Of a stretch of DNA of 64,000 bases, positions 28,857 to 59,252 are shown one piece after another (the first letter of the stretch is position 1; every line of letters starts with the position of its first letter). The stretch is from positions 248,001 to 312,000 of the IMG/VR virus record IMGVR_UViG_3300023174_000040, one strand, 5' to 3'. The notes below the pieces were generated by a model. The model saw only the letters and a list, made by a program, of their open reading frames with translations, had not been told where the DNA came from and ran no database searches. A program made the position numbers and the translations under genes.

Positions 28857-30224
28857 TTAATTTATGAATTTCTGGCGGATTAGCTTATTATTTTCAATAA
28901 CAAACAAGTTATCTATTAGATTTCCCGCACTTAGAGTGTTGAGGCACATAATTGCAATATTGGCATTCTCTTGAAAATCGTTCCTAACACACAGGGAAAC
29001 AATGCCATCCTTATTAAATTCTACCCTATTTTCAGAGGGAATCTCGATTTCTAAATCATATAGTTTTTGATTTAATACCATAGATCTTTCAAAATAATCT
29101 GAAATTCTTATTTTCTTTATAGGGTCGGTGGAACTCTGGGCTGATATGTCGCTTAGGGACAAAGATTTAACATTATTGGATAATATATTTCTTTTTGTAA
29201 AAACTCGGGTTAAAATTGATGATAACTTTGATCCGTTATCGGCATCTATAGCTATCATTTTTTGTGCCAAAGCATCAAACAATCTGTTTGTGATGGGGGT
29301 TTGGGATACCGCAGTTACGAAATAATGAAAAGTTATGTTCCTTGCAAATATTAAAGCTTGAATAGGAGAGGATCCATTTTTGACACTATCGTTATAAATC
29401 TCAACTAAACATTCATACCAGGCGCCCGTCCAAACTCTACTAAAACTATGACACTCTCTGCTGAGAATGTTATCCGGGGTCTCATTCCTTAAATTTTCAG
29501 GGGCAACATAATAAAATTCATTAGCAGCGTCTCTCAATGAATGAGGATTATATCCGCCTTTCCCTTTTGTTAAATTAAATAAAATCTTTGCAAATTGCTC
29601 GGCAAGCTTTGACACTGAGTTGCTTTTAGATAAGTCTCCTTTAGTTTCCTTTATTATATATTTAATAACATCTTCATTTTCTAATATGCTTGTTATAGCA
29701 ACTATATCTCCAAAACTTTCATGTAAAGCCCATATTTCATAAGATTGAACGTTCCAAAAATCTGGGCGGATAGAGTCTAGTAGAGCGTGACCCAATTCAT
29801 GAGAAACTATGTCAGCAGAGTCTGCGGAATAGATGTTCTTCTTTGCAACCGGATCAAATTCATAAAAAAACTTTAAACTTCTTCTATCGTAGAATGCATT
29901 TAATTCCTTGCCGGCCACAGGGTAGACAGTTAATTGTTTTGTTGCGGCCCACTTTTGTGGAAATTTTTTAATCTTTGGAATAATATTGTCCATGGTATTG
30001 ACTAAAATTCCATAACAACTGGCGGCTCTCCACTCGGGGGTGCCTACTTTATGACCCGAACCCTTATACCCATCGACCTTCATGGGCAAAGAAGGAGTTG
30101 AATTAGCCGGTATTTCTTTTACTAGCTCAGGTAAAGTTGGATCATTTACCCAAAATTGAATGGGAGCGGAAGGATTATCAGAGATTAATTTCTTACCAAA
30201 TACTTTTTTAAATAAGCCCCACAT
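28857..30224 (-). CDS. Zinc metallopeptidase (M4/M36 thermolysin/fungalysin-like)
   Basis: NAFY, IVSHELGHALLD (HExxH), ALHESFGD (third ligand). Confidence 0.85.
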   Translation of the reverse strand: MWGLFKKVFGKKLISDNPSAPIQFWVNDPTLPELVKEIPANSTPSLPMKVDGYKGSGHKVGTPEWRAASCYGILVNTMDNIIPKIKKFPQKWAATKQLTVYPVAGKELNAFYDRRSLKFFYEFDPVAKKNIYSADSADIVSHELGHALLDSIRPDFWNVQSYEIWALHESFGDIVAITSILENEDVIKYIIKETKGDLSKSNSVSKLAEQFAKILFNLTKGKGGYNPHSLRDAANEFYYVAPENLRNETPDNILSRECHSFSRVWTGAWYECLVEIYNDSVKNGSSPIQALIFARNITFHYFVTAVSQTPITNRLFDALAQKMIAIDADNGSKLSSILTRVFTKRNILSNNVKSLSLSDISAQSSTDPIKKIRISDYFERSMVLNQKLYDLEIEIPSENRVEFNKDGIVSLCVRNDFQENANIAIMCLNTLSAGNLIDNLFVIENNKLIRQKFIN

Positions 30225-42949: not shown

Positions 42950-44374
42950 ATGAATATTAATGCTAAATTTCTCAACGAAGCGAAGGAGTTAGAAGGTCGT
43001 TGGAAGAAAACCGGCTTGTTGGAGGGCATCGAAGATCGTTACGTCCGATCCACCACAGCTGTTCTTCTCGAGAACCAGAGACTCATCAATGAAGTTTCAA
43101 CCGACACAGGTGATGTTGCTCAATTCAAAAGAATCAGCATCCCACTTGTTCGCAGAGTTTACCCACAGTTGATTGCAAACAAGATCGTCTCGGTCCAGCC
43201 ATTGCTCGGACCAACCGGTCTAGTTTACTATCTCCGTTTTAGATATGGCAGCAACAAGGGTGCTGTCCGTGGAGCCGCTAAGGGCGGATTCCCAGGTGAT
43301 GACGTTAACTCACTACAGCAGTTAGCCGATGGTACAGCCAATCTCGACGTTTTCTACTCTCATCAGTTCGTTCAGAACGAGAGCCATGCTGACGCCGGTG
43401 GCACAACCACAAGTTTCACTGTTGAGCACATTCCAGTTATCGCTGGCACAATGACCGGTACAGTTTATGACGGCAACACAGTTGTCAATACTTTCGTTGT
43501 TTCAGCTGGCGGCACAATGAGTGTCACCGACGTTGGATCACCAAATCCAAAGGTAACAAGTGGTACACTTGATCCTTCAACTGGTGTCGTTAGTCTAACC
43601 TGGAACAGTGATCCAAGTGCCAACACCGTAGTTGTATCATATGAGTACAACATGGAAGGCAACAAGGATATGCCCGAGATCAATCTAGCCATCGAGAGCG
43701 AAGAGATTGCAGCCAAGACTCGTAAACTGAAGGCAGTTTGGAGCTATGAGGCTCAGCAAGATCTACGTTCACAGCACAACCTCGACGCCGAGGCTGAGCT
43801 AACTGCCGTTCTTGCTCAGGAAATCAATCTAGAAATCGACCGTGAAGTTCTAGGTGACCTCCGCAATAACGCCGGTACCGTCAGTGCTTGGGACTATAGC
43901 ACCGCCCTCGGTGATACAGTCAAGGAACGCTACGAGAGTCTATACGTTAAGGTTGTTGAAGTCAGCAACGTAATTCATCGTAAGACACTACGTGGTGGTG
44001 CCAATTGGTTAGTAACAAGTCCAGAAGTTGCTTCAGTATTCGAAACAGCCACAGCCGGTTTCGCTCCAGCTCCTTCAGAGACTTTCACTAGCTCACTCGG
44101 CATCCAGTATGTCGGAACTGTGAACAATCGTTGGAGACTCTACAAGGACCCACTGTTCCCAACAGGTCAAATCCTAATGGGATATAAGGGCGACAGCTAC
44201 ATGGACAGCGGATACTTCTACTGCCCATACGTGCCACTCACCCAGACTCCAGTAGTCCTTGATCCAGATTCCTTCACACCACGTAAGGGTCTGTTAACAA
44301 GGTATGGGAAGAAGTTGCTTAGAGAGGGAGCAAAGTTTTATGCCCGCCTCAACATAGCCAATTTTATCGTGTAA
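42950..44374 (+). CDS. gp23: Major capsid protein (T4 gp23-like)
   Basis: IPLVRRVYPQLIA...VQP, KTRKLKAVWSYEAQQDL, EINLEIDREV, YCPYVPL, TRYG. Confidence 0.97.
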   Translation: MNINAKFLNEAKELEGRWKKTGLLEGIEDRYVRSTTAVLLENQRLINEVSTDTGDVAQFKRISIPLVRRVYPQLIANKIVSVQPLLGPTGLVYYLRFRYGSNKGAVRGAAKGGFPGDDVNSLQQLADGTANLDVFYSHQFVQNESHADAGGTTTSFTVEHIPVIAGTMTGTVYDGNTVVNTFVVSAGGTMSVTDVGSPNPKVTSGTLDPSTGVVSLTWNSDPSANTVVVSYEYNMEGNKDMPEINLAIESEEIAAKTRKLKAVWSYEAQQDLRSQHNLDAEAELTAVLAQEINLEIDREVLGDLRNNAGTVSAWDYSTALGDTVKERYESLYVKVVEVSNVIHRKTLRGGANWLVTSPEVASVFETATAGFAPAPSETFTSSLGIQYVGTVNNRWRLYKDPLFPTGQILMGYKGDSYMDSGYFYCPYVPLTQTPVVLDPDSFTPRKGLLTRYGKKLLREGAKFYARLNIANFIV

Positions 44375-44508: not shown

Positions 44509-44874
44509 ATGTATCAAATTAAATGTCCTGACTGTGGCGAGGAAAGAACTGTGAAGGCTAAAAAGAAATGGATGAAGAATGAGCCTCCATTTTTAAAGAT
44601 ATGTAAAAGTTGTTGCCAGATAGGTAAAGAAAAAACTCCAGAGTGTCGTGCAAAACTTTCTGAGGCTGTAAAAGCCATTCAAACAGAAGATGTCATTAAT
44701 AAAAAGAGTCAATTTATGAGAGATCATCCTGAAATCTGGGAGAATAATCTTATTTTTGGATACTCAGCAGGATGGAATAAAGGCCTAAAGATGCCGAAAT
44801 CATCAGAAGACAAAAAACAAAAAATATCAGAGTCGATGAAAAACACACTCGAAGAGAAAAAGAAAAACAAATGA
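44509..44874 (+). CDS. Zn-ribbon/NUMOD3-like DNA-binding protein
   Basis: CPDC, CKSC, GWNKG...KQKISESMK. Confidence 0.65.
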   Translation: MYQIKCPDCGEERTVKAKKKWMKNEPPFLKICKSCCQIGKEKTPECRAKLSEAVKAIQTEDVINKKSQFMRDHPEIWENNLIFGYSAGWNKGLKMPKSSEDKKQKISESMKNTLEEKKKNK

Positions 44875-46004
44875 ATATCGAAGAATTTGAAATTAAATAC
44901 GGAGAATATGGCTTTAGAGACAAAATCTCTATATTTTGCAGCACTGAAGGCTGTGAAAATCATATGTTAACAAATAAAGACTCGGCTGTCAGAAATATAA
45001 AAAAGCATGGAACATTCAAGTGCAGAACTTGTTGTTACACAGAGGACGGAAAAAAAAGAATATCAGAGTCTACATCTTATAAACGTTCGCCAGAAACATG
45101 CAGAAAAATGGCAGAAGCAAAAATAGCTTTTTATCTTACCGAGGAAGGAAAGAAACTTAAGAAGAAACTCTCTGTGCTGACGGCGGAAAACCATTCAGTA
45201 CATAAATATGATAAGTCCAAAAGAAGAGGAGTGTTTGAATCTAAAAAAACGGGCAGGAAACTTTCCTATGATTCTTCATATGAGCTCAGGCTTTGCTGGC
45301 TCTTGGACTCCGATGAGACAGTATTAGATTTTGAAACTCAACTAGGATTTCAAATAAACGGAAGAGGTAGATGTTTAGATTGTCTCGTGACTTACAAAAG
45401 TGGTAGGAAAAAAGTAATTGAAATGAAGCCTAAACAAAGAATAGATGAGTTTAAAAATCAAATAGAAGATACCAAAGAATATGCTAATCAAAATAATTGG
45501 GACTTTCAATTAATGACAGAAGACGATTTAGGAATGAACTATAAGCAGATTAGATTATGGGCAGATGATTATAGAACAGAGAATACCGGAATTGATTATC
45601 ATGAATATAGAAAAGAAAATAATAGAAAAAAAGCCAAAAAACACTATCACGAAAAAATAGCTTTAGATAAAGTTAATGTTTATTGTGAATATTGTAAAGA
45701 AAATCATTCTGTTTTAAAGAAAAGCCATGATAGTAATATAAAAAGAAACGGAAAATACATCTGCGAAAAAGAAGGTGGGCACATATCAGGAAGTAAGCCT
45801 AAACCACATTTGATTAAAGAAAATCCTTATGCAAAGGAAGGCAAAAAGCAATGTAAAAAGTGCAACGAAATTAAATTTTTTGAACTTTTTAATAAAGATA
45901 AGTCGAGAAGAGATGGATATAGAGAGTATTGCAAAGATTGCGAATCAATTAAACAAAAAGAAAAGTATAAGAAATCTAGGTCAGAGAAACCTACCGCTGA
46001 TTAA
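44871..46004 (+). mobile_element. TnsA-N-type PD-(D/E)XK endonuclease with Zn fingers; probable free-standing homing endonuclease
   Basis: YDSSYE, DCLVTY, VIEMKPK, W.FQLMTEDDL; C-terminal CKKC...CKDC. Confidence 0.75.
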
Positions 46005-47108: not shown

Positions 47109-47179
47109 GCGGGATTGACATAACGGCCGTGTGCAAGCCTTCCAAGCTTGAAAAACGAGTTCGACTCTCGTATCCCGCT
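47109..47179 (+). tRNA. trnG: tRNA-Gly(TCC), CCA not encoded
   Basis: Acceptor GCGGGAT/ATCCCGC, D arm ACAT/GTGT, anticodon arm CAAGC-CTTCCAA-GCTTG, T arm ACGAG-TTCGACT-CTCGT. Confidence 0.93.
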
Positions 47180-47899: not shown

Positions 47900-50233
47900 T
47901 CAGGGAGCCACTGTTGTGGTTGTGGGAGCCACTGTTGTTGTTGGGGCCGTCGTGGTGGTTGTCACCGGTGCAGCAGACACAACCTTTGAAGGATACGAAT
48001 AAAGCATCTGTGAACAGACCGTTGATGCAGGAATCCATGCTCCCTTCTTTGATGATCCGCTTAGTACTCCTGCTTTTAACTTAGTACCTGGATCAATGAA
48101 CTTCCAAGTCGAACATCCACAAGAATTTAAAGTGGATCCTATTTTTAAATCTTTATTATGCTTCAAACATCTTATATTAGTGTTACAAATAGTGCTACCA
48201 CAAGATTTAGGTTCTTCCGCTACAATAATAAAAGGCTCAGTTATGGTATCTAAGAATTTTTGTGCTACATCCCCCATTTCAGATGTCATCATCTGACTTC
48301 CGTCGAGTTTAGACATTATTATAGAATATATTTCTTTTCTGTCGCCTATTCCATCAATTGCATGATCGTCATAATTTGTTGATTCGTCATAAAGATGAGT
48401 AATTCCATCGCTGTTGCCTGGAACGATTATTAAATGAGTGGGCGCTACTTCCTCTTGTGCTGCTTCTACGGTCTTAGCAAACACAGTGTAATCATTCGAT
48501 CCAGATATTATTGATAAAACAGCCACTGAATAACTAGTTCCTCCGTCTGCGCCAATATCTCCAGTTATACTAAATTGAGTAATGTCTATATTTGTAGCCA
48601 CTAAAACAAACATACCAGGATACATGGAAGTGAAATATTGACTTCCTTCTCCGAAATAATCTGTTCCGTCTTCTATTGTGCTGTCGAAATATATTGGTGA
48701 ATAAATATTCTTTGAAGCACCTCCTGCTGCCCATTGAGGACCAAAAGAAACTTCATTGGGCATCTGGGTGTGGGTGGAAGGAATGGAAAGATCATAATCT
48801 ACTTCATCTTCTTTAATATCATCATAGATTTGAGTTAGATTGGTATTAAAGAAATTACCGCCATCATACATATCAAATCCGCCATCATCAATACCGGTTA
48901 CTAATGGCATATATTCGGATCCAAAGGATCCTGGGGCTCCTGATGAATTTAATTTAACATAGTATCTTTTTGGTTTAATAAAATATCCACCAATCCATAT
49001 ATCGCCAGAAGATACTTGATATATATCATTTACTGATGGGTAGTATGAATTATTATCTATTTGATTACTAGATCGATTATTTCCATAGAAATCATTTGCT
49101 CCACCAAAAGAACTGTCTAGTGATCCATCTGAATTAATTTTACAGATGTTATTTCTAACTGATGGTGTGTCTCCGGGATATCCGAAAGCATTGAAATTAC
49201 CACCAACAATCATTTTTCCATCATCTAAAAGTTCAATCTTTGTTATATAGGGAGGATAGAAATTTTCCTCACCATAATATCCAGCTGGGATGTAGTAAGC
49301 AATTCCAGGATTTTGTGCTCCTTGTGCGTCTAAACCAAAAGATGTATCTATATAGCCATTTTCATTTATTCTACATATGCTATATAGTGTTGTGGTTATT
49401 CCAGTATCTGAGATTACACTAAAATTTCCGCCCACTATTATCTTATTATCATCTTGAACCGCAACTGTTTTCAAGAAACTCTCGTTATTGAAAGCGGGGG
49501 GAATAAACGTATCATCTTCAATCCATGTTGAAGTTCCACTATCATATACATATCTGATAATATGTTTATCTTCTAAATTATATCCTACTGCAATTAATCT
49601 TTCCTCAGAGTCTATTGCAACATCATATACTGCGTCAAAGTTAGAGTTTGCTTCTATCGGGACTTGAGTTCCATCATCATTTAGGATCATAATTCTAGAA
49701 GTGAACCGGCCAGCCACTACCGAAGTATTGTCACTTAAGGCTAGAATTTTATTCACAACTCCATCTATTGCGCCATTTAATGTAGAATCAAAACTGGCGT
49801 CAAAGACACCATTTGAATCAAATTTGGCAATATAGTGTGAAGTTTGTGTTGTAATAGATCCGTCTACAGAATGATTGTAGAACCAACCACCTAATAATAT
49901 TTTTCCATTAGGTTGGACGGCAACAGTGTAGATAGAATCACTAAATCTTATGGCGGGAAATGTTTCATCTCGGACACCGTTTTGGCTTATTTTCAATACC
50001 TCTGAGTAGCAACATTCCCAGTTAGCATCTGGTATTCCGTCTACAAACCCTTCTCCGGCCAAAAGCATATCTCCATCATCATGCTGGGTAATGCTATTCA
50101 CTCTACTAGTGTTACATTGACAACTTATGTAGTTTTCAACTTCATCTGTGAAATAATTCAGATCCGGTGCCATTGCAGTTATTTCTGCGTGATCAGAATT
50201 TAGCCTATCTAGTGCGTTCTGTATGTTCAACAT
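47900..50233 (-). CDS. Delta-60-repeat beta-propeller protein with Thr-rich tail
   Basis: IYTVAVQPNGKILLGGWF, VAVQDDNKIIVGGNF, INSDGSLDSSF repeats. Confidence 0.75.
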   Translation of the reverse strand: MLNIQNALDRLNSDHAEITAMAPDLNYFTDEVENYISCQCNTSRVNSITQHDDGDMLLAGEGFVDGIPDANWECCYSEVLKISQNGVRDETFPAIRFSDSIYTVAVQPNGKILLGGWFYNHSVDGSITTQTSHYIAKFDSNGVFDASFDSTLNGAIDGVVNKILALSDNTSVVAGRFTSRIMILNDDGTQVPIEANSNFDAVYDVAIDSEERLIAVGYNLEDKHIIRYVYDSGTSTWIEDDTFIPPAFNNESFLKTVAVQDDNKIIVGGNFSVISDTGITTTLYSICRINENGYIDTSFGLDAQGAQNPGIAYYIPAGYYGEENFYPPYITKIELLDDGKMIVGGNFNAFGYPGDTPSVRNNICKINSDGSLDSSFGGANDFYGNNRSSNQIDNNSYYPSVNDIYQVSSGDIWIGGYFIKPKRYYVKLNSSGAPGSFGSEYMPLVTGIDDGGFDMYDGGNFFNTNLTQIYDDIKEDEVDYDLSIPSTHTQMPNEVSFGPQWAAGGASKNIYSPIYFDSTIEDGTDYFGEGSQYFTSMYPGMFVLVATNIDITQFSITGDIGADGGTSYSVAVLSIISGSNDYTVFAKTVEAAQEEVAPTHLIIVPGNSDGITHLYDESTNYDDHAIDGIGDRKEIYSIIMSKLDGSQMMTSEMGDVAQKFLDTITEPFIIVAEEPKSCGSTICNTNIRCLKHNKDLKIGSTLNSCGCSTWKFIDPGTKLKAGVLSGSSKKGAWIPASTVCSQMLYSYPSKVVSAAPVTTTTTAPTTTVAPTTTTVAP

Positions 50234-50287
50234 ATTGCTCCTTTGTGTATAAATTTATATATTATACAATATGTTGAATTTTAAGTT

Positions 50288-50500
50288 TTATTCATCTTTT
50301 TTAAGGGTAAGACTTCCCGAAGAAAAGAACATCTCATATATTCTTGAACAACACCTTTGTGGTGTCCATTTTAAACTATAGCAATTTTTTATTAATGATT
50401 TTATATCTTTATTGATATCTAATACATCGCCCATTGGAGTATATGGATATTCCAAGTTCCAATATTTTAAAACACTTCTTATGTAAAAATACTCTTCCAC
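50288..50500 (-). CDS. Small hypothetical protein
   Basis: 70 aa ORF between the RNA terminator and the delta-60 gene. Confidence 0.4.
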   Translation of the reverse strand: MEEYFYIRSVLKYWNLEYPYTPMGDVLDINKDIKSLIKNCYSLKWTPQRCCSRIYEMFFSSGSLTLKKDE

Positions 50501-50523
50501 AAACTAAAATAGTAAAATTAAAT

Positions 50524-50565
50524 AAAAAAAGCCGGTTGAAACCATTTCTAGTTTCAACCGGCTTT
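50524..50565 (-). terminator. Strong intrinsic terminator closing the large RNA
   Basis: 15-bp stem AAAGCCGGTTGAAAC/GTTTCAACCGGCTTT with U-run on minus strand. Confidence 0.9.
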
Positions 50566-51434
50566 AGTAGATAGAAGAAGTTTACGATCCACTCATATAC
50601 AGAGGAATGAATCGTATAAAATAGTCCGTCACTTTAACAGCAGTTCCTATAGGTCTCCTCTACCATTGGATGTTTTTCATCCACCGTTTTACCTATATGT
50701 GACAGTCGTAGTCCGTTCGCCACTCATATTTCTTTTAAAGCTAAACTACCCACAAAATATCACCTGTTACCAGTGACCCCTTTGGTGGTTGATCTAACAA
50801 TATCTGGATTTACTCGTACCGAACATTCACCACAACACTCTCATTTGTTTAACGTGTTTGAGCCAACACGTCGTTTCTAGGGTTGTTTTTGCTTTTCAGC
50901 ACCCAGACTCAATATCACTATTCACCGTCGCCACGGTTGCTCCATAATAAAATAGAGGGGTTGTTAAAGACACTGCCAGTCTCCTTAACTTATCCCGTGA
51001 TACTAAGAGGACCGCTACATTTGATTTCAGTGGGATAGTCTTTCTCAAGACTAATGCGTTCCCAAATTCCTCAACGTCGTTAGTTCTGACTTCTTGTCTT
51101 TAAAAATTATTTCTAATTTTTAAATTTATACAAGTCAAACATCCTCTTACCGAAGCCCACCACAAAGTTCCGACAAAAAATCCCCCTTGATTTTTTAGTT
51201 CAAGGTTTCTTCTTTATCGTATACTACCTCTTTTTGCCTCTCAGCAAACTAGTAATATCCCAACCCTTCTTTTCACGGATTAGGCTTTTGAGATCGTGGA
51301 AGCATTTCTGTTTCCATCGATTGTCCTTGTGGCTTAATTTTTTCGCCAACACATTTCAGTGCTAGCAAGGACTTTGTTTCAAATTGTCAAAGAGCAAGTT
51401 TTTTCTTCAACTCATCATTTCCGACGTCGTTGAT
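50528..51434 (-). ncRNA. Large (~0.9 kb) highly structured non-coding RNA; GOLLD/ROOL-class or a new class
   Basis: No ORF of 60 aa or more; promoter and terminator bracket it; many GNRA/UUCG hairpins and G-U pairs valid only on minus strand. Confidence 0.8.
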
Positions 51435-51440
51435 GGGCTC

Positions 51441-51468
51441 AGTATAGCGACTCCTTGAACCCTCGCAA
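51441..51468 (-). promoter_or_regulatory. Sigma70-like promoter of the large RNA
   Basis: TTGCGA-16 nt-TATACT on minus strand. Confidence 0.7.
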
Positions 51469-51742
51469 GCCCCTATCCAAAAATTTTTTTGAGCCTATTT
51501 TTACGGGTAATTTTGCACTTTTCTTTTTTTTATTTAAAGTTTTTAAAATTTTTTCTTTGGCAAAAGAAGATAATTTTTTTTTTAAAAAAAATCAGCGGTT
51601 CTAGGGCAAATCACAGTCTTCACCGTAGTTGTTAACGTTGAAGCTGGGTCTCCATCGCCGTGGGTTCTAATTTTAGATTACTGAACATATTTTTCCTTAA
51701 TTATGTATAGATATATATGTTATTTAATAAAAAGGAATTAAA

Positions 51743-52198
51743 ATGGCAGATATAAAAATATCAGAATTACCATTGGGCTCAGCAAATAAAGATGCAGTTG
51801 TACCAGCAACAAATGCCGCAGGAACACTAACAGAAAAAATAAAATTAGGAGATATTGCATCTCTCTATAAGCCTACAGTGGTAGACCTAGGCGCCGACAC
51901 ATCCATATCAATAAACGCCAGTTCCGGTGACATATTCGACGTAGATGTGGACAACAACGTGACAATAAGCAACCCGACCTGGACGGGCAGTGCCGTCGAC
52001 GGAAAAACCATCAAGATAAGAATGAATTGGATAGATGCGGGATATACACTAATATTAGGCAATAAATTCGCACTACCAGACGGAGCAACAGATCCTCTTC
52101 CGGTTAGCGAAGTCACAGGAAAGACCGATCTGTTTGCGGCCACTTATCATGCCGGCAGAGACAAGTGGGACGTTGTGGCCTTTATCCCGGGATACTAA
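51743..52198 (+). CDS. Tail-fibre-associated protein
   Basis: MADIKISELP N-terminus typical of fibre proteins; AAGGA RBS. Confidence 0.55.
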   Translation: MADIKISELPLGSANKDAVVPATNAAGTLTEKIKLGDIASLYKPTVVDLGADTSISINASSGDIFDVDVDNNVTISNPTWTGSAVDGKTIKIRMNWIDAGYTLILGNKFALPDGATDPLPVSEVTGKTDLFAATYHAGRDKWDVVAFIPGY

Positions 52199-52205
52199 TT
52201 ATTTT

Positions 52206-54983
52206 ATGGCAACTCTTTATTATAACAACGCCGTTGGAAACGAAGACTGGTCGACGCTGGGAAACTGGTGGCTTGATGATTCTTTCTCTACCCCCGCAAC
52301 CCAGCTTCCAACAAGCAGTGATGATGTGGAGATATACGAATCGCTGACAAGTAATTCAGGAAGCGTGCCCACTGTCAACAATCTGACAAACAACTCGGAA
52401 AACTATAAAGGTCTTCAAACGTCGGTGATTGTTCTTGGAACTGCGACCTTCAATGGTCATAGCTTTGGTGGGTATGTCGCTGGCCTTCTCCCCACCATAA
52501 CCGGGAATGCAGTCTTCAACGATTATTCTATGGCAAGCGATTTTCGTATTCATGGAAAAGTCACATTCAATGACTATTCAGTCGCAGAAGCAAACTTAAA
52601 TGATGGAGACGACTGGGATCTAGAGGTCGTATTCAATGATTATAGCAGAAAAACGGCGGCTATCCACTCGTCGGGCGTTGTCACATTCAATGATTATAGT
52701 CGTAATATTAATGGAACTATTAATGGTGGTTTGATTATATTCAATGATAACTCAACCAATGCACAAGATTTAACAGCAGAACAATCAACAGTAAATGCGA
52801 TTTTCAACGACTATTCGTATAACACGGGAACAATATCAGAAAACACAGTTTTCAATGATTATTCAAAAAATTATGATGGAGTGATATACGTAGACTCAAA
52901 TAGTGGAGATAATAATAACGACATATCCACACCACAAAGTCCATATAACACAATTCAAAAAGGATTTGTGACTGCGTATCACTTGGTTCCAAAATTAACA
53001 ACCGTAGACGGGGTAAAATGTGCTAGTTTCAATGGATCAACAGATTACTTAAATGTTCTTCCTGTGCAAGGAGCAAACATACAGGAAACTTTTACTGTGG
53101 AATTTTGGTTCTATATGAAAAGCGAAACAAGTGGAATCTACACCCTTCTGAGCAACTTGTTTAATCAAGGATCTAATTCACAAACTCATCCATTATGGAA
53201 GGTAAATATCTGCACAAGGACTTATTTGGGCTTTGCAGACGCTCCCGGCGGCAATGTAATTTCTGTTTCTGGGAAGGTCGTCGCTTCGGATCCCTCAGTT
53301 GTAGGAAATACCTTCTCCAACATAGAGTTAAATGAATGGACTCATTTTGCAATGGTTGCAGATGGAGGAGTGTTTAAGATATACTTAAATGGAAATTTAG
53401 AATCAACACATAATTTTACTGGGGGCTATTCTTTTGGAATTGATGAGGGTGATGATCTTAGAAGCGGATTAGATATAGGCTACGATTATGATAATGGCGA
53501 TTTTTTTGACGGATACATAAGCGGAATAAGAATATTCAACGACGCCGCAGTCTACACAAGTACGTTCACGCCCAGTTCCCCGGATGATTTTGGATCCACG
53601 GTAGGATTACACACAGCCAGCTTTCTGTGGAATTTTGACACTCCCAAGAATTATCTGATAGATGTTAAGGCCTTGGATCCCCAAGACGATGTCTGGAGCG
53701 CAGACGCTGGACCAGGCAGAAATCACGGGGAAGCCACAGAGTGGCCAAACAATATAGCGTTAAGAGGCAATAATACCAACGCAGATGGATCACCATGGAA
53801 AGAAGTAATAATATCAGAAGAAGATCTTCAATATGCCACCGAAGCGGCAGGCGCAAATTTGCTCTCGGATGGATTCACAACAGATGGAACTTCGAATGGA
53901 AAAATTAATTTTATTGGAGCAACCAATCTAGAAAATAAATTTTTACTTAACAATTCGAATACATTCTCAAATAATAGTTTGCAAGGAGTTTACATTGTAG
54001 AGTGGGCCGAAGGGAGCACATCCAAAAAAAGTCGGGCGTATTTGAGTTTTACATCGGGGCCAAATAATATAAGCGTGCGTCCTACAAATGACCAATACGG
54101 CATCATTAACTTGGCAGGGACATGGAAACTGCCGGCCAAATTTAAACCGGCTTCATCCATGGGCAATATAAATTTCAGTGGACGGGACGCAGTGTGGGAT
54201 TACGCCGAAGATGTGGCAATAACAACATCAACCAATGGAAGAAAAATAGACATACTAACGTACGGAGAAGTTATCATAGGCGATATTTCTTCCAACGGGG
54301 GCGGGAGGGACGGAGGCGCAGGCCCGGGGAGTGGCGGAGAAGTAAGGATCAACAACGTGATGGCGGACAACATCAACGTCAACGGAGGGGACGGAGCTAA
54401 CTTCGACCCATTCTTTTTGACACAAGGAGGCGGGGGAAATTTCACAGGAATAAATTCAAACGTCAAGGACATACATTTGAATCCCGGAACAGGGGGCTAT
54501 GCACAAGATGGAGGAGACATAATCCTCATAGGATCCAAGGCCAAAAACATCTATTCGCACGGAGGACTGAGCGCCGACTGCGGCGGCGGCGGAAGTGGCG
54601 GCGACCTTTTCATGCTGAACAGCACGGTGGGTGAGGTAGCATGCTACGGCTACCCAGGCGACGGGTGCGGGTCGGGTGGAAGTAATGGAGGATACGCAAC
54701 AATAATAAACAGCACGGTGGATTGGCTAAGACTAAACGGAGCGAGCGACGGCACTTCTTACGGGCAAGGCGGAAATGCGGTGGTCATAGACAGCAGCATC
54801 ATGCTTGCGGACGTAACCAACTTCGGGCTTCCAAGTGAAATGTGTAATGACATATATGGCCACCCATGTGAATCTGAGCAAATTCCGGGCTATGTCGTGG
54901 CTCCCAACCATGATTACGACGGCTCAATAAAGACACACACGACAAAGAAGCAGGCAATAAACGGACCAGGATTCCTCGGATAA
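52206..54983 (+). CDS. Fibre/receptor-binding-like protein: FNDYS beta-helix repeats, LamG-like domain, Gly-rich C-terminus
   Basis: About 7 (V/A)xFNDxS repeats; FTVEFWF...EWTHFAMV...IYLNG...GYISGIRI. Confidence 0.65.
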   Translation: MATLYYNNAVGNEDWSTLGNWWLDDSFSTPATQLPTSSDDVEIYESLTSNSGSVPTVNNLTNNSENYKGLQTSVIVLGTATFNGHSFGGYVAGLLPTITGNAVFNDYSMASDFRIHGKVTFNDYSVAEANLNDGDDWDLEVVFNDYSRKTAAIHSSGVVTFNDYSRNINGTINGGLIIFNDNSTNAQDLTAEQSTVNAIFNDYSYNTGTISENTVFNDYSKNYDGVIYVDSNSGDNNNDISTPQSPYNTIQKGFVTAYHLVPKLTTVDGVKCASFNGSTDYLNVLPVQGANIQETFTVEFWFYMKSETSGIYTLLSNLFNQGSNSQTHPLWKVNICTRTYLGFADAPGGNVISVSGKVVASDPSVVGNTFSNIELNEWTHFAMVADGGVFKIYLNGNLESTHNFTGGYSFGIDEGDDLRSGLDIGYDYDNGDFFDGYISGIRIFNDAAVYTSTFTPSSPDDFGSTVGLHTASFLWNFDTPKNYLIDVKALDPQDDVWSADAGPGRNHGEATEWPNNIALRGNNTNADGSPWKEVIISEEDLQYATEAAGANLLSDGFTTDGTSNGKINFIGATNLENKFLLNNSNTFSNNSLQGVYIVEWAEGSTSKKSRAYLSFTSGPNNISVRPTNDQYGIINLAGTWKLPAKFKPASSMGNINFSGRDAVWDYAEDVAITTSTNGRKIDILTYGEVIIGDISSNGGGRDGGAGPGSGGEVRINNVMADNINVNGGDGANFDPFFLTQGGGGNFTGINSNVKDIHLNPGTGGYAQDGGDIILIGSKAKNIYSHGGLSADCGGGGSGGDLFMLNSTVGEVACYGYPGDGCGSGGSNGGYATIINSTVDWLRLNGASDGTSYGQGGNAVVIDSSIMLADVTNFGLPSEMCNDIYGHPCESEQIPGYVVAPNHDYDGSIKTHTTKKQAINGPGFLG

Positions 54984-54995
54984 AAAGGACAAAAC

Positions 54996-55268
54996 ATGAT
55001 CAAATTCGACCCGCCACTAGAAGTGCAAGTAAAAGGAAAGAAAATAAATGTGAGCGAGCTGCCCCTTGTGGTAATTGACATTCAAAAAACCAAAGTATGC
55101 AAGGCGCAATCCTCCCGTTTCTACAAGACATTGACCTTGTGGGAAGGGGCGTCTTACGACGCCATAGGAAACTACACACAGGAGCAAGCGGAGGCCAGAT
55201 ACCTAGAACTGCTCGGTAGCAAACCAGCAAAAGAACTCGCAAAACTATACGTAGAACCAACCAAATAA
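54996..55268 (+). CDS. Small protein, possible fibre chaperone (paralog of 59255)
   Basis: LWEGASYDAIGNYTQEQAEARYLELLG. Confidence 0.55.
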   Translation: MIKFDPPLEVQVKGKKINVSELPLVVIDIQKTKVCKAQSSRFYKTLTLWEGASYDAIGNYTQEQAEARYLELLGSKPAKELAKLYVEPTK

Positions 55269-55278
55269 AGTAAAAAAA

Positions 55279-58200
55279 ATGGCAAACCTAGAGCAATACA
55301 CACCGATATACATAAAATCAAGCGGCAACGACTCCACAGGGGATGGAAGTAGTGGCAATCCATACCTAACGGCCCAGAAGGCGTTTGAAGTCGCCTATGC
55401 GGGAACGGGACTCAAAGTCCTTGATTTCACGGAGGGAAATTTCGGAGGCGTTAATCTAAATGGATTCAGCGATTGGCCCTCAAGGATTGCTGTTCGTGGG
55501 GTAGACAGTCAATCAAGCGTTTTGGGAGGTATAATAGGGGCTTCAAAAAAAATAAGCATAATAAGCGACAAAACCGTTGAAATCGGAGAAATAAGTGGCG
55601 GATCGACCGTGCTAACGGACTGCAAGGCCGGCAAAGTAAATTCGGCATCAATAAGTTTGATAGACTCTGATGTGGTGGGATTAAACTCATCAAGAACCTC
55701 CTGCTCCGGAAAGGCCAAGGGGCTCGGCGGAGGAAACATACTTGGCCCGAGCAGGACGGAAAAGGTCTCCTTGCTCCTGCACATGGGTGGCAGCAGGGAA
55801 AACATTGCAACATTCACCGATTATTCCATTGACACCAAGAATATAAAAGTCAAGGGAAATACAAGGATCATAACTGGAGTTTATACATGTAACGGATCCA
55901 GCTGGCCACATTGCGGATATTTCCCGCCGCCGGCTCAGCAGTCCTGCTTCTTCGACGGGAATGGAAGCTACCTTGAGACGAAGGAAGAAAAGGACTTCGG
56001 ATTCGGAAGGGGAGACTTCACAATAGAGTCTAAAATATACATCCCATACGACAGCTGGGGCACCACGGGAACAATATTCAACCTGGGCGGGGGAATAAAA
56101 CTCAGGACCTATGGCGCAGAAAGCCTGGTGATAGACGGAGAAACATACAACTGGTATCCAGGGGATAACATTCCCATCGACCAGGAAGTCCATGTCGCAA
56201 TGACAAGGAAGGGCGGAGAATTCAACATATTCGTTAACGGAGAAAGGGTCTTCCAGCTCACCGGGGTCTCGGTGGACCTTGGAAGATCCAACATTCTGAG
56301 GATAGGGGCCGGGGAAGAGGACGGAATGGAAGCCTTTTATTTGTACGGATACCTCAGGGAGTTCAGGGTCGTAAAGGGAAGGGCGGTATACAGTGGTGAA
56401 TTCCTCCCGCCAACTGAAGCACTTTCCGTGATCGTTGAAGACCACCCATCCTTGGATTCAAGGACGCTCTACTTCAACAACATCGCCAACGACAACAGTT
56501 GGACCAACCTTAATAACTGGTGGTCGGACGAGGCTTGTACCGTGCACAGCAGTTCCTTGCCGGGGGAGCACGACAAGGTGGTGGTCAGGGGTGCGGCATT
56601 CGACGGCATAAACGTAACCGTTCGCAAATTGACCATGTTTGCTGACGGGAATATCCCATCGCACACATCATTCAAAAACTCAACCATAAACGCACGTAAC
56701 GGAATATTTGCAATCACGACAGGTGCGGGATATGTTGAGTCTGGGGGGTCGGGGTTTGCGAGCACATGCGCATTGAACGGGAACGTGTTCTTCTTTGAGA
56801 GTGATGCAACCCAAGGCACGATGAGCGCACAGGTCGACGGAAACCTTACGGTGGGAGGTTGCGATGTCGGGGTAAACGTATATGTAAGCGGAAGCGTGAT
56901 AGTCAAGGGCGACTGTACGAACTTTGGACATGTGGGAAAAAATCTTATAGTTGAACTGGGAGGGTTCGGAAACGGAAACGGTGCGGTACATCCCACAATT
57001 GAAGGCAACGCAATTTTCATTGGCGGCAGGGGACTCGTGGCCACGGCCGATGGGTCGCCCAGCCCTGGCAATTGGGGGGCGATCAATGGGAATGCCGAAT
57101 TTTATCTGGGGGCTGTGAACGCAGGAAACGTATATGGAAAAGCATATTTTCACGACAGTTCGAACGGAGGAACATTGCACAATGGTGCGACCTTCGTAAG
57201 CACCGTAGGTGGGGCTGCGATGAATTGGCTTCGTGATGAAAACGGCGAAGGAAGCGGCGCCTTTGGACTCATAAACGGAACCACAAAAATATACGGCGCC
57301 GGCTACGTTGGGGGCTCCGGAAGTTTCTTTGATGACGTCCACCTGTACGACGGCGTGATCCTAACAAATACATTCAAGCCTCCACTCATAGAAGGCAACA
57401 TATATTGCCACGACAATTCAACGCTGGGAAGCGTAGCATGCCCTAGCGATGTGTATTTCTACGACAACTCCCACGGCAACATGAGCTACAGCCCGGGGCT
57501 TAATTCAGACTGGCTGCTCGCCACTTACGGAACACCAGACTGGGAGGGATGGAGCGAAGGCCAGTATCGTCCGATCAACGGATATGATCCACCCAACCTG
57601 AGGTCGGACTTCTACGTTGGTAGCTGCGCCCTCTACGGGAATTCAACCCTTGGAGACTTCCTCGTCCTTAACGACCTGACGCTCAACGGCGAAAGCGGAA
57701 TGACCCAGTACAACGTGACTGCCACAACAGGCGGAGATCAAGGTCTACGCCACGGGGTTCTCGAAAGCGGAACGAGGGTCGAGGGAAGGATAATATGCAA
57801 CACCACCGGGGACTGCTACCCAGACATACTGAGCCTCACGGTGAACGCAGGCCATACGGGGTACAAGACGTTCATAGTGGGTGGATGCTCATATGTAAAT
57901 GTAAAAATTAATGGAAACATATCAACCATAGAAGGCAGCTCGGTAGATTTGAGCTACATAATAAATCAATTTGAACTGACGGGTTTTCTAAACATAACCA
58001 TTCAACCATGTAGTATGGATGGGAATCCTACTTGGGAACGAATAACATCGTTCATTACCTACCAAGCCCTGAACTTCATCACGGGAGTGGGAAGCCTTAG
58101 GGGCATGAACAGAATCGGCACATTAGATCTTATCAACATTCAAAACCCAGAACTGGATGTGTTGAGCCTGAAGTCGCTTCAAACACTGAATCTGTCGGGG

Positions 58201-58563
58201 CCAAACATAGCAAGCGTGAACGTAAGCGGACTAAGGAACCTGAGCTACATAGACATTTCAAACAATGGCGGGACCCCGTCCCTAGAGTCGGTTTTGGCCT
58301 ATGGCTTCGGAACATGGGCGGGATACAATGGAAAGGCAAATTTCCGCATAATATACGGTTATGACAACAATATGGATATGACTGCGTGGGTGGAATTCTT
58401 TGAGTCTCTGGGCGATGGCACCGCCGGCGGAAGTAAGAATTACATCAATGCGTTGACAAGCGGATGCACGGTACAAGATGCAATCAACTATATGATAAAC
58501 AACCACGTCTCCTGGGAGATGGGCGACGTGGGATGGTATATAGAAACGGGGAGCGACTGCTAA
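55279..58563 (+). CDS. Large fibre/receptor-binding-like protein with LamG-like, beta-helix and LRR-like segments
   Basis: GDFTIE...HVAMTR...IFVNG...LREFRV; LQTLNLS/LSYIDIS LRR-like. Confidence 0.65.
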   Translation: MANLEQYTPIYIKSSGNDSTGDGSSGNPYLTAQKAFEVAYAGTGLKVLDFTEGNFGGVNLNGFSDWPSRIAVRGVDSQSSVLGGIIGASKKISIISDKTVEIGEISGGSTVLTDCKAGKVNSASISLIDSDVVGLNSSRTSCSGKAKGLGGGNILGPSRTEKVSLLLHMGGSRENIATFTDYSIDTKNIKVKGNTRIITGVYTCNGSSWPHCGYFPPPAQQSCFFDGNGSYLETKEEKDFGFGRGDFTIESKIYIPYDSWGTTGTIFNLGGGIKLRTYGAESLVIDGETYNWYPGDNIPIDQEVHVAMTRKGGEFNIFVNGERVFQLTGVSVDLGRSNILRIGAGEEDGMEAFYLYGYLREFRVVKGRAVYSGEFLPPTEALSVIVEDHPSLDSRTLYFNNIANDNSWTNLNNWWSDEACTVHSSSLPGEHDKVVVRGAAFDGINVTVRKLTMFADGNIPSHTSFKNSTINARNGIFAITTGAGYVESGGSGFASTCALNGNVFFFESDATQGTMSAQVDGNLTVGGCDVGVNVYVSGSVIVKGDCTNFGHVGKNLIVELGGFGNGNGAVHPTIEGNAIFIGGRGLVATADGSPSPGNWGAINGNAEFYLGAVNAGNVYGKAYFHDSSNGGTLHNGATFVSTVGGAAMNWLRDENGEGSGAFGLINGTTKIYGAGYVGGSGSFFDDVHLYDGVILTNTFKPPLIEGNIYCHDNSTLGSVACPSDVYFYDNSHGNMSYSPGLNSDWLLATYGTPDWEGWSEGQYRPINGYDPPNLRSDFYVGSCALYGNSTLGDFLVLNDLTLNGESGMTQYNVTATTGGDQGLRHGVLESGTRVEGRIICNTTGDCYPDILSLTVNAGHTGYKTFIVGGCSYVNVKINGNISTIEGSSVDLSYIINQFELTGFLNITIQPCSMDGNPTWERITSFITYQALNFITGVGSLRGMNRIGTLDLINIQNPELDVLSLKSLQTLNLSGPNIASVNVSGLRNLSYIDISNNGGTPSLESVLAYGFGTWAGYNGKANFRIIYGYDNNMDMTAWVEFFESLGDGTAGGSKNYINALTSGCTVQDAINYMINNHVSWEMGDVGWYIETGSDC

Positions 58564-59252
58564 TGAACTACTTCAAGACACCAAGCAACAAATACCTCGC
58601 CTTTATCCCTAGGTCGGGAAGCACAAGTTTCGCAAGGGCCATAGTAACCCAATTCTATCCGGAACTCCTTCCGAGGCTCGAGAAAAAACATCCTAACAAA
58701 ACGGATCCAAAGCCCCAGTTCATCTGCCCGTCCAGCAGCTTTCCTGACGGGGACGCCTATGCCCTCATAAGGGACCCGGTGGAAAGGTTCAGGAGCGGAT
58801 TTTCAAGGGCAAATTTCGGAAGGACCGTGGACGAGGTGATAGAAGACCTTTTCAAGGGCGAATGCATAATGAACGTTCACATCGAACCGCAGAGCAACAG
58901 GATAAAACACCAAAAGGACATAAAGTGCTTCAAGTTCCCAGAGGGAATAAACGCACTTTCGGAGGCACTTGGGATGACGCCACCCGAGCAGGAAAATGAA
59001 AGCGAGGACGGCGAGAAGCCGAATCTCACGCAGAAGCAAATAGACAATTTAAGAAAATACTATTTTAAGGACGTGGAACTGTATGAGAATGCGAGTGTAG
59101 AATACACACCAACCACAACAGAACCAACCACAACAGAACCAACCACAACAGAACCAACCACAACAGAACCAACCACAACAGAACCAACCACAACAGAACC
59201 AACAAACATTAATGATGAAGTGGATATGCCCAGATTATTTAAAGGAAAATAA
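58563..59252 (+). CDS. Sulfotransferase (Sulfotransfer_2-like) with PTTTE tail
   Basis: IPRSGSTS (5'-PSB), IRDPVERFRSG (3'-PB), HIEPQS, YYFKDVELY. Confidence 0.75.
   Translation: MNYFKTPSNKYLAFIPRSGSTSFARAIVTQFYPELLPRLEKKHPNKTDPKPQFICPSSSFPDGDAYALIRDPVERFRSGFSRANFGRTVDEVIEDLFKGECIMNVHIEPQSNRIKHQKDIKCFKFPEGINALSEALGMTPPEQENESEDGEKPNLTQKQIDNLRKYYFKDVELYENASVEYTPTTTEPTTTEPTTTEPTTTEPTTTEPTTTEPTNINDEVDMPRLFKGK
59109..59198 (+). repeat. Perfect 15-nt tandem repeat CCAACCACAACAGAA x6 (PTTTE)
   Basis: Read directly from sequence. Confidence 0.95.

Follow-up and report, generated by a model that had tools for sequence, protein, structure and literature searches.

Only a handful of natural non-ribosomal RNAs longer than 500 nt with intricate conserved folds are known, among them GOLLD, ROOL, OLE and the large ribozymes. 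GOLLD RNA (Rfam RF01998) is phage-encoded, about 800-900 nt long and a stand-alone gene, highly branched, rich in tetraloops and A-minor donors, known from lake metagenomes, and of unknown function. It forms a 14-mer cage and is reported to pull down ribosomes (PMC12286853). ROOL RNA (RF03087) is a large ornate RNA of phages and prophages of about 580 nt, with no known protein partner; it is abundant where measured, forms an octameric cage and is often located near tRNA islands. Both phage RNAs were recently shown to build protein-free cages whose purpose is still unknown.

In the present analysis, a locus from an uncultured T4-like giant phage of lake metagenomes was examined. The DNA analysed, referred to as the window, was a stretch of 64,000 nt (positions 248,001 to 312,000 of IMG/VR record IMGVR_UViG_3300023174_000040). 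The contig carries a T4-type major capsid protein, prohead protease, terminase and tail genes; the locus is thus phage-encoded, as is GOLLD. An initial annotation, made from sequence alone, had proposed a stand-alone non-coding RNA of about 0.9 kb at 50528-51434, with its own promoter and terminator, and had read it as either a divergent member of GOLLD/ROOL or a new class. The observation was confirmed: most of the listed elements were found in the sequence at the stated coordinates, and they exceeded chance. The interpretation was only partly supported, as explained below.

Comparison with described families

Rfam 15 covariance models yielded no GOLLD, ROOL, OLE, HEARO or intron match at the gathering score on the whole window, and none at E <= 10 on 50200-51800 with permissive filters. 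The only weak hit, 25 bits to Bacillus ncr982, covered just the terminator hairpin. No match was obtained in GenBank phages by blastn. The reading as a divergent member of GOLLD or ROOL was therefore not supported, although this negative result was obtained without a positive control of the GOLLD model on a known GOLLD; of the two proposed alternatives, a new class is the one favoured by the evidence.

A GOLLD or ROOL too far diverged for the Rfam models remains very unlikely. In its favour are the same size class, the phage-borne and lake-derived origin, the many GNRA loops, and the longest invariant blocks in the 3' half, reminiscent of the conserved 3' region of GOLLD; however, the variants compared here differ by 12% or less, and the most divergent one lacks the 5' half. 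No variable internal linker is evident. The initial annotation had also pointed to a tRNA 3.3 kb away, as GOLLD is often located beside tRNA genes or interrupted by them. This argument is weak: the only tRNA in the 64 kb is a tRNA-Gly(UCC) at 47109-47179, 3.35 kb away on the other strand with four genes in between, which is not a tRNA island, and no tRNA lies inside the RNA. The host is a T4-like jumbo phage rather than a Lactobacillales or mycobacterial prophage. Compared with ROOL, this RNA is about 330 nt longer.

OLE RNA and raiA motif RNA are likewise large (200-600 nt), highly structured bacterial non-coding RNAs with conserved junctions and debated functions. Both are chromosomal RNAs of Bacillota and Actinomycetota, and OLE (RF01071) has dedicated protein partners (OapA-C) encoded nearby. 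No model match and no such genes were found here, the neighbouring genes being DUF5122, Stig1-like, Laminin_G_3 and Metallophos.

HEARO and the omega RNAs of IscB and TnpB are structured RNAs linked to mobile elements, about 150-300 nt long and fused to the end of their nuclease gene. An IS605 TnpA-TnpB pair lies beside the RNA in one variant locus of a related phage (L093), but as an insertion after the terminator; in the other variants examined, no TnpB or IscB was found next to the RNA. As for group I and group II introns, besides the lack of a model hit, the element has its own predicted promoter and terminator and no split ORF around it.

Unclassified long non-coding RNAs without ORFs are also abundant transcripts in large myoviruses, for instance the two lncRNAs of Staphylococcus phage K (PMC9241854) and T4 stable RNAs C and D, of unknown role. 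The T4 RNAs are about 120-140 nt long and lie in the tRNA cluster. These RNAs are defined by transcription, not by a conserved ornate fold.

Sequence features and predicted fold

The features of the locus, all on the minus strand, are as follows (window coordinates, with RNA positions where given).

51469-51575, minus: conserved A/T-rich upstream region, including an A7T5 tract directly upstream of the -35 hexamer (UP-element-like; this role is inferred).
51441-51468, minus: predicted sigma-70-type promoter TTGCGA-16-TATACT.
50521-51434, minus: predicted transcript, a structured non-coding RNA of about 910 nt (5' end inferred 7 nt after the -10, 3' end in the T-tract).
51153-51374, minus: predicted 5' domain (RNA nt 61-282), closed by two long-range helices and holding five hairpin arms, three of them GNRA-capped.
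51085-51139, minus: long A/U-rich hairpin with GAAA loop, with an 11-bp all-A/U tip at 51124-51099.
51031-51064, minus: hairpin TAGTCTT-GAGA-AAGACTA on a 5-bp base helix.
50638-51017, minus: predicted large central/3' domain (RNA nt 418-797) of multi-way junctions, including a 45-nt block invariant in all variants (RNA 483-527, window 50908-50952).
50697-50844, minus: extended irregular arm (RNA nt 591-738) tipped by the GUAA hairpin.
50583-50616, minus: 12-bp hairpin (RNA nt 819-852) with several G-U pairs.
50521-50565, minus: predicted intrinsic terminator, with a 17-bp stem, GAAA loop and T7 tract.

The promoter was found by a promoter scan and is unique in the window; its exact pattern is expected 0.00 times in shuffles of the window. 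The -10 hexamer is invariant among the variants and the -35 varies only to TTGTGA or TTGCGG, while 7 of the 16 spacer bases differ in variant L085. The upstream region stays alignable between the window and L085 for about 100-110 nt upstream of the -35, although the upstream genes differ, and the CAAAAAAATTTTTGG tract is invariant in 4 variants. A T4-type late promoter TATAAATA was not found upstream; only TTTAAATA lies in the conserved upstream region. The conserved piece further upstream (51575-51665) was not notably structured (z = -1.3). The terminator stem (50565-50528) has 17 bp, not the 15 bp given in the initial annotation. As no transcript has been observed, promoter, 5' end and expression level are all predictions.

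No coding potential was detected. No ORF of 100 aa or more lies between 50234 and 51742, and public gene calls on the identical ENA and Logan contigs leave the RNA span empty. All six frames contain 11-21 stops, and recoding any one stop codon does not open a frame. Variable sites are spread 37/43/35 over the three codon phases, and single-base indels occur between variants.

The hairpins listed in the initial annotation were mostly present. Besides the 11-bp A/U stem with a GAAA loop and TAGTCTT-GAGA-AAGACTA, these were TGCT-GAAA-AGCA, TTTGCT-GAGA-GGCAAA, GGAAACA-GAAA-TGCTTCC (one A.C mismatch), CTG-GTAA-CAG, ACGTGTT/AACACGT, GGATG/CATCC and CCTTGA/TCAAGG. In contrast, the gc-UUCG-gt hairpin has only 2-3 bp and is not used in the predicted fold, so it is weak. 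G-U pairs, which had been cited as strand-specific, account for 40 of the 293 predicted pairs. The claim of higher GC than the flanks is true only locally: the RNA is 38.9% GC against 25-30% in the two immediate intergenic flanks, while the whole window is 36.5% and neighbouring genes are 35-47%.

The sense strand folds at -295 kcal/mol (z = -13.5), against -206 kcal/mol (z = -4.5) for the antisense strand. Of 118 windows of 914 nt sampled across the 64 kb on both strands, this region had the lowest MFE, 4.0 sd below the GC trend. Of the 293 predicted pairs, 198 had a probability above 0.9. Eight GNRA-capped hairpins with stems of at least 4 bp were counted, against 0 on the antisense strand and a mean of 1.1 (sd 1.07, maximum 6) in 1000 dinucleotide shuffles. 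That the many GNRA loops mean tertiary or intermolecular docking, as had been suggested, is a reasonable inference, but only their enrichment is shown.

Conservation among variants and genomic context

Six variants at 88-99% identity were found in related uncultured T4-like phages. The structure was predicted from the window sequence alone and then scored on these variants, covariation having been named beforehand as a test of the RNA reading. Ten pairs changed on both sides and all stayed paired, with 0 broken, whereas slid controls gave 0.7 kept and 2.2 broken. One-sided changes were 33 compatible and 24 broken, compared with 23.2 and 41.7 in slid controls (Fisher p = 5e-6). The same test on the antisense strand's own fold was not significant (p = 0.15), and reading the same helices on the antisense strand gave 13 compatible and 29 broken.

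The family is narrow, however: the variants come from one phage clade and the most divergent covers only the 3' 530 nt. Covariation is therefore thin, with 10 double changes in 8 helices, and most long-range helices are invariant and untested. The 24 pair-breaking changes indicate that parts of the predicted fold are wrong. The helices 418-427/787-797 (4 pair-breaking changes, closing the central/3' domain) and 534-537/542-545 look doubtful.

The 5' domain, also predicted by RNAalifold, shows an A-U to U-A change in the GGAAACA-GAAA hairpin and a GAGA to GCAA change that keeps the loop GNRA. In the central/3' domain, two compensatory pairs were found in hairpin 446-472 and one in 563-584. The irregular arm (RNA nt 591-738) shows three double compensatory pairs and 12 one-sided compatible changes, against 2 broken. 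The 12-bp hairpin (RNA nt 819-852) carries two adjacent double compensatory pairs (A-U to G-C and C-G to U-A) in the lineage of variants L092 and L100. The terminator is 100% identical in all six variants.

It was evident that the RNA is far more conserved than adjacent genes. Between the window and L085, the RNA is 94.2% identical, while the adjacent Metallophos gene is 85.6% at the nucleotide level, with four-fold sites at 52.6%, and the adjacent DUF5122 gene is 63.9%. Comparable results were obtained for the window and L093 (RNA 97.6%, DUF5122 77.9%) and for the window and L092 (RNA 87.9%, Stig1-like gene 72.5%). High conservation relative to neighbours could partly reflect recent exchange of the cassette between phages rather than selection alone.

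As the initial annotation had stated, the RNA sits between the head module (gp23 at 42950-44374) and the large Laminin_G_3 fibre-like genes (52134-58563). Homology ends at the terminator in three downstream contexts: a same-strand 70-aa ORF plus DUF5122, a convergent DUF5122, and a convergent methyltransferase; in L093, the IS605 element sits just after the terminator. This rules out a leader of the downstream gene.

These contexts bear on the possibility of a cis-acting leader of the downstream 70-aa and DUF5122 genes, or of an antisense regulator pairing with another phage mRNA. In the window, the RNA lies upstream of the DUF5122 gene on the same strand, and a 15-nt identity with the plus strand at 29874-29888 would be complementary to the minus-strand gene there. 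However, the 17-bp terminator with T7 separates the RNA from the downstream genes, and in L085 and L092/L100 the downstream gene is convergent. The 15-mer has E = 0.05 in the window and its last four bases differ in L085 and L100, and 900 nt of conserved structure is far beyond what a leader or an antisense RNA needs. This possibility is very unlikely.

The view that the region has no function of its own, being a decayed gene, a mobile-element remnant or spacer DNA that happens to fold, is strongly disfavoured to a similar degree. The region does lie in a rearranging, hypervariable part of the genome and the family is very narrow. Nevertheless, it is the best-conserved stretch of its neighbourhood, its substitutions preserve pairing on one strand only, its fold stability and GNRA count are extreme outliers, and its promoter and terminator are conserved.

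Searches for distant homologues confirmed the narrow distribution. An nhmmer search with filters off on 80 loci around gp23 of related phages (80-97% capsid identity) found none outside the close clade. Seven scans of viral contigs (two by protein, five by DNA pattern), one of metagenome contigs and one of genome contigs gave only the family itself plus chance matches (loci L088, L089, L103 and L104-L106). A covariance model (R1) built on the irregular arm found only family members in 1.13 Mb of related-phage DNA. Homologues of the neighbouring genes in ENA, JGI and Logan yielded variants L093, L100 and L107, whereas the more distant phages L094, L095 and L113-L116 have no RNA and no gap. An analogous RNA was also sought in the same slot of relatives: ORF-free gaps of at least 450 nt in those loci were unstructured, and in locus L038 the gap is just long palindromic terminators, with no Rfam hit. 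Within the window, no paralogue was found by nhmmer or by R1, and no diversity-generating retroelement template or any repeat of the region beyond 15-mers was detected.

Possible roles of the predicted RNA

The locus is best explained as an independent gene for a non-coding RNA of about 910 nt. It fits the description of a large ornate structured non-coding RNA (more than 500 nt, non-coding, with a strand-specific, unusually stable multi-domain predicted fold, and with covariation at the limited depth of six close variants) and represents a new family of that kind. What the computation supports are the transcription signals, predicted but conserved across variants (a host-type promoter with an A/T-rich upstream tract and a strong intrinsic terminator), the absence of coding, an exceptionally stable, multi-domain and GNRA-rich predicted fold of the sense strand, strong purifying selection that preserves base pairing, exact boundaries kept while the flanking genes change, and the lack of a match to any described RNA family. 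What is inferred is that the RNA acts in trans as an architectural RNA, that its domains pack through GNRA-loop/helix (A-minor-type) contacts into a compact particle, and that its function lies in its shape, most likely as a homo-oligomeric assembly or a scaffold made in quantity during infection, in the manner of GOLLD and ROOL but evolved independently. That this is a real, selected, structured RNA gene is highly likely, while the architectural or self-assembly mechanism is only tentative; for the explanation as a whole, confidence lies between the two. No palindromic loop or covarying loop-loop pair that would speak for oligomerisation was identified.

A less likely alternative is a scaffold or decoy for a protein or the ribosome, working as a ribonucleoprotein, for example by binding a phage protein such as the neighbouring delta-60/DUF5122 beta-propeller or by sequestering a host RNA-binding factor or defence protein. 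A DUF5122 (delta-60 repeat) gene lies next to the RNA in 5 of 6 variants, even though its orientation differs between the window and L085, and a protein partner cannot be excluded; OLE works with protein partners, and the reported ribosome pull-down by GOLLD points the same way. In contrast, DUF5122 is only 57-61% identical at the protein level where the RNA is 94% identical, a methyltransferase takes its place in the L092/L100 lineage, and more distant phages keep the DUF5122 gene without any RNA or gap beside it. GGA motifs of the CsrA-sponge type were not enriched (18 observed against 20.3 in shuffles).

A large ribozyme of a new class, with conserved junctions forming an active site for instance for RNA processing or ligation, is also improbable. 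Historically, most bacterial RNAs of this size and complexity are catalytic (group I and II introns, RNase P, rRNA), and long invariant blocks are present, including the 45-nt block in a multi-way junction. However, with 12% divergence or less, invariant blocks say little, no similarity to any ribozyme family in Rfam was found, the RNA is not inside a gene and thus not an intron, and the recent structures of GOLLD, ROOL and OLE show assemblies, not active sites.

A more far-reaching reading, unlikely but not excluded, is that this is a third, evolutionarily independent class of giant phage RNA assembling without protein into a closed or symmetric multimer or, alternatively, a new large ribozyme, in either case made early by a T4-like jumbo phage to act on the host, for example by enclosing or sequestering a host macromolecule.

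With its clear boundaries (predicted promoter and terminator, and no partner gene identified), the RNA would be a fresh, compact subject for cryo-EM and for working out what such RNAs do, and it could be synthesised and tested directly even though the phage is uncultured. An unrelated 910-nt ornate RNA in a different phage lineage, that of T4-like freshwater jumbo phages, would show that giant structural RNAs are a recurrent phage invention rather than two curiosities.

Genomic context and predicted transcription signals

The window belongs to IMG/VR contig 3300023174_000040 (323 kb). A T4-type major capsid protein (Pfam Gp23, E = 1.5e-89), a prohead protease, a T4-type large terminase, and tail and PKD-domain proteins were identified in it, and the window therefore represents the structural region of an uncultured T4-like giant myovirus. 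The RNA lies within the largest ORF-free stretch of the window. The features of the region are as follows.

42950-44374, T4-type major capsid protein (gp23)
44871-46004 (+), 377-aa protein next to the capsid gene, combining a TnsA-like endonuclease N-terminal domain with an endonuclease VII/HNH-type C-terminus; probably a free-standing homing endonuclease
47109-47179 (+), tRNA-Gly (anticodon UCC), the only tRNA in the 64 kb, between the head genes and the Stig1-like/DUF5122 pair
47900-50233 (-), 777-aa delta-60/DUF5122 beta-propeller gene
50234-51742, largest ORF-free stretch
50288-50500 (-), 70-aa ORF with no family match, between the RNA terminator and the DUF5122 gene
50565-50528 (-), predicted terminator, a 17-bp hairpin followed by T7
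51468-51441 (-), predicted promoter TTGCGA-16-TATACT
51743-59252 (+), ~7.5-kb block with genes for a 151-aa protein and two ~1000-aa Laminin_G_3 proteins, which are probably fibres

In related phages, a plain Endonuclease_7 gene was found near gp23 (locus L094), and the 70-aa ORF was also called as a gene in the relatives L096, L097 and L108. In the close relative L107, the T4-type portal protein gene (L107:3249-5759) carries an intein, with Intein_splicing and Portal_T4 on one 836-aa product, while the related loci L114-L116 contain a Hom_end/Hint-containing AAA protein.

The promoter pattern occurs only once in the window, with 0.00 occurrences expected in shuffled sequences. Between promoter and terminator, every reading frame contained 11-21 stop codons of all three kinds, and reassignment of any single stop opened no frame longer than 137 codons. 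Gene callers applied to identical ENA and Logan contigs annotated nothing in the RNA span.

The observation made in the initial annotation was confirmed. The hairpins listed there are present, although the one with the UUCG loop is marginal, and the terminator stem has 17 bp rather than the 15 bp originally stated. The GC content of the RNA (38.9%) is above that of the two A/T-rich intergenic flanks (25-30%), as had been claimed, but is ordinary for the window as a whole (36.5%).

Predicted fold and its conservation among variants

The sense (minus) strand was predicted to fold at -294.9 kcal/mol, with z = -13.5 against dinucleotide shuffles, while the antisense strand yielded -205.6 kcal/mol and z = -4.5. 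Among 118 windows of 914 nt sampled across the 64 kb on both strands, this one had the lowest energy, even below regions of 47-52% GC, and it was located 4.0 sd below the GC trend. Of the 293 predicted pairs, 198 had a pairing probability above 0.9. Eight hairpins with at least 4 contiguous pairs were capped by GNRA tetraloops, compared with none on the antisense strand and 1.1 +/- 1.07 (maximum 6) in 1000 shuffles, and no other stretch of the window exceeded five. Three more GNRA hairpins contained a mismatch or bulge near the loop.

The predicted architecture, from the 5' to the 3' end, is as follows.

5' end, a GAAA hairpin and an A-rich single-stranded linker
nt 61-282, 5' domain closed by two long-range helices, with five arms
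next, a long A/U hairpin and a GAGA hairpin
nt 418-797, large central/3' domain with several multi-way junctions, holding a 45-nt block invariant in all variants and an extended irregular arm tipped by a GUAA loop
3' part, two hairpins
3' end, the terminator, identical in all six variants

The sense strand is purine-rich (A 34%, G 24%, U 27%, C 15%).

No match to the RNA was found in GenBank phages, and it was absent from the 10-kb flanks of gp23 in 78 other related contigs. Pattern scans and look-ups of neighbouring proteins recovered six distinct variants, all from metagenomes (handles beginning with L denote related loci).

Variants of the RNA, loci with the same sequence, and identity to the window
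Window type; L001, L083, L084; reference
L082; L096; 97.9%
L093; none; 97.6%
L107; L108; 97.5%
L085; L098, L099; 94.2%
L092/L100 lineage; none; 87.9% (last ~530 nt only, as all three contigs end inside the RNA)

The three contigs of this most divergent lineage (L092, L100 and L102) are independent assemblies from JGI, ENA and Logan, and all break at about nt 384-440 of the transcript, which may reflect strain heterogeneity or low coverage there. Further scans yielded only chance matches, and a covariance model of nt 590-745 found nothing else in 1.13 Mb of related-phage DNA. The family is therefore real but narrow.

At the 3' end, homology between contexts stopped at the terminator T-tract. 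Downstream, the window carries the same-strand 70-aa ORF and the DUF5122 gene, while L085 carries a convergent DUF5122 gene (57% identical protein) whose stop abuts the terminator, and L092/L100 a convergent methyltransferase gene. In L093, an IS200/IS605 element (L093:1251-2516; a TnpB/OrfB_IS605 gene and a Y1 TnpA gene) is inserted directly after the terminator, between it and the delta-60 gene. Another TnpB fragment was observed at the edge of L114. The DUF5122 gene lies beside the RNA in 5 of 6 variants, in opposite orientation in L085 (L085:3978-6479). It encodes a protein of 777-833 aa with a cysteine-rich C-terminal part, whose closest cellular relatives are T9SS-sorted surface proteins of Bacteroidota, which may hint at the host or at a receptor-binding role.

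Upstream, the window carries the fibre genes, whereas in L085 a Metallophos gene directly precedes the RNA. The same gene in the window lies 8 kb away, with the ~7.5-kb Laminin_G_3 block between it and the RNA. Comparison of window 51743-59252 with L085:2242-3062 showed that this block is missing from that position in L085, and this fibre-like island has been rearranged between close relatives. About 100-110 nt of A/T-rich sequence upstream of the -35 are nevertheless shared, including an invariant A7T5 tract. The -10 is invariant and the -35 nearly so, while 7 of the 16 spacer bases differ in L085. A 41-nt A/T-rich stretch upstream of the RNA promoter (51536-51576, minus strand) is deleted in L082. 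The piece beyond it (51575-51665) is shared by the window, L082 and L093 and ends in a T8 run, but it is not unusually structured (z = -1.3). The conserved promoter elements and terminator boundary in changing gene contexts are the pattern expected of a functional promoter and of an autonomous gene, and this pattern excludes a leader of the downstream gene. A cis or antisense regulator in general was considered very unlikely.

The RNA was the most conserved element of its neighbourhood.

Nucleotide identity of the RNA and of neighbouring genes
Window vs L085; RNA 94.2%; Metallophos 85.6% (four-fold sites 52.6%), DUF5122 63.9%
Window vs L093; RNA 97.6%; DUF5122 77.9%
Window vs L092; RNA 87.9%; Stig1-like 72.5%

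Part of this contrast could come from recent exchange of the cassette between phages, which would still imply that the unit is kept intact. Variable sites showed no three-base periodicity (37/43/35) and single-base indels occurred, indicating that the constraint is not on a protein.

To avoid circularity, the structure was predicted from the window sequence alone, and the other five variants were then examined at the predicted pairs. Ten pairs had changed on both sides; all ten remained canonical and none was broken. In ten controls with the 3' partner slid by 1-5 positions, an average of 0.7 were kept and 2.2 broken. One-sided changes were compatible 33 times and disruptive 24 times, compared with 23.2 and 41.7 in the controls (Fisher p = 5e-6 for all changes). 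At least two predicted helices (418-427/787-797 and 534-537/542-545) collected only disruptive changes and are probably wrong, while the long-range helices that close the domains were invariant and thus provided no test of pairing. The antisense strand's own best fold showed no such enrichment (p = 0.15), and reading the sense helices on the antisense strand turned most one-sided changes into mismatches (13 compatible, 29 broken). The double changes fell in eight helices, namely nt 114-142, 446-472 (two), 563-584, 622-709, 647-685, 658-676, 739-786 and 819-852 (two). In individual cases, GGAAACA-GAAA-TGCTTCC became GGAAACT-GAAA-AGTTTCC, and the GAGA loop became GCAA, which is still GNRA. The reading of the region as non-functional DNA was regarded as very unlikely.

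Comparison with known RNA families

A search of the window against Rfam 15 (4227 families) returned only the tRNA-Gly at the gathering score. On the 1.6-kb region at E <= 10, five chance-level hits were obtained, the best of which (25 bits, to a Bacillus sRNA) covered only the terminator. GOLLD, ROOL, OLE, HEARO, introns, RNase P, tmRNA and rRNA were all absent, with the caveat that this result was not calibrated by a positive control on a known GOLLD. A very divergent GOLLD or ROOL was left as an improbable reading.

The region is not repeated elsewhere in the window, so it is not a retroelement template, and it is not enriched in GGA motifs, so it is not a CsrA-type sponge. No such RNA was described in the literature examined. 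In more distant relatives that keep the DUF5122 or Metallophos genes, neither the RNA nor an analogous structured gap was found. The related phage L038 has a 460-nt ORF-free stretch (L038:17494-17953) at a similar distance from gp23, which folds strongly on both strands (z about -10 and -8.5) because it carries long perfect palindromes of terminator type, but it gave no Rfam hit and has no similarity to the RNA studied here.

Inferred mode of action

The computational evidence shows an autonomous, conserved, strand-specific and exceptionally structured non-coding gene. What lies beyond this is inference. Transcription would be carried out by host RNA polymerase from a strong sigma-70-type promoter with an UP-like tract, and would thus probably be early and abundant. 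The RNA would fold into a compact multi-domain body held by GNRA-loop docking, and would act in trans through its shape.

By analogy with GOLLD and ROOL, the only other giant phage RNAs whose structures are known (PMC12286853), the leading guess is a homo-oligomeric RNA assembly or scaffold, although this can be proposed only tentatively. An RNP scaffold or decoy was judged less likely, a new ribozyme was considered improbable, and appreciable room remains for an explanation of another kind.

The interpretation offered in the initial annotation was partly supported: it correctly described a stand-alone ornate RNA and probably a new class, whereas membership in GOLLD or ROOL was not supported. 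The assessment is tempered by the narrow distribution and the thin covariation, and rests on sequence alone, without expression or functional data. On this evidence, the RNA represents a new, unrelated family within the small group of large ornate phage RNAs, and it is of high interest to RNA structural biology.
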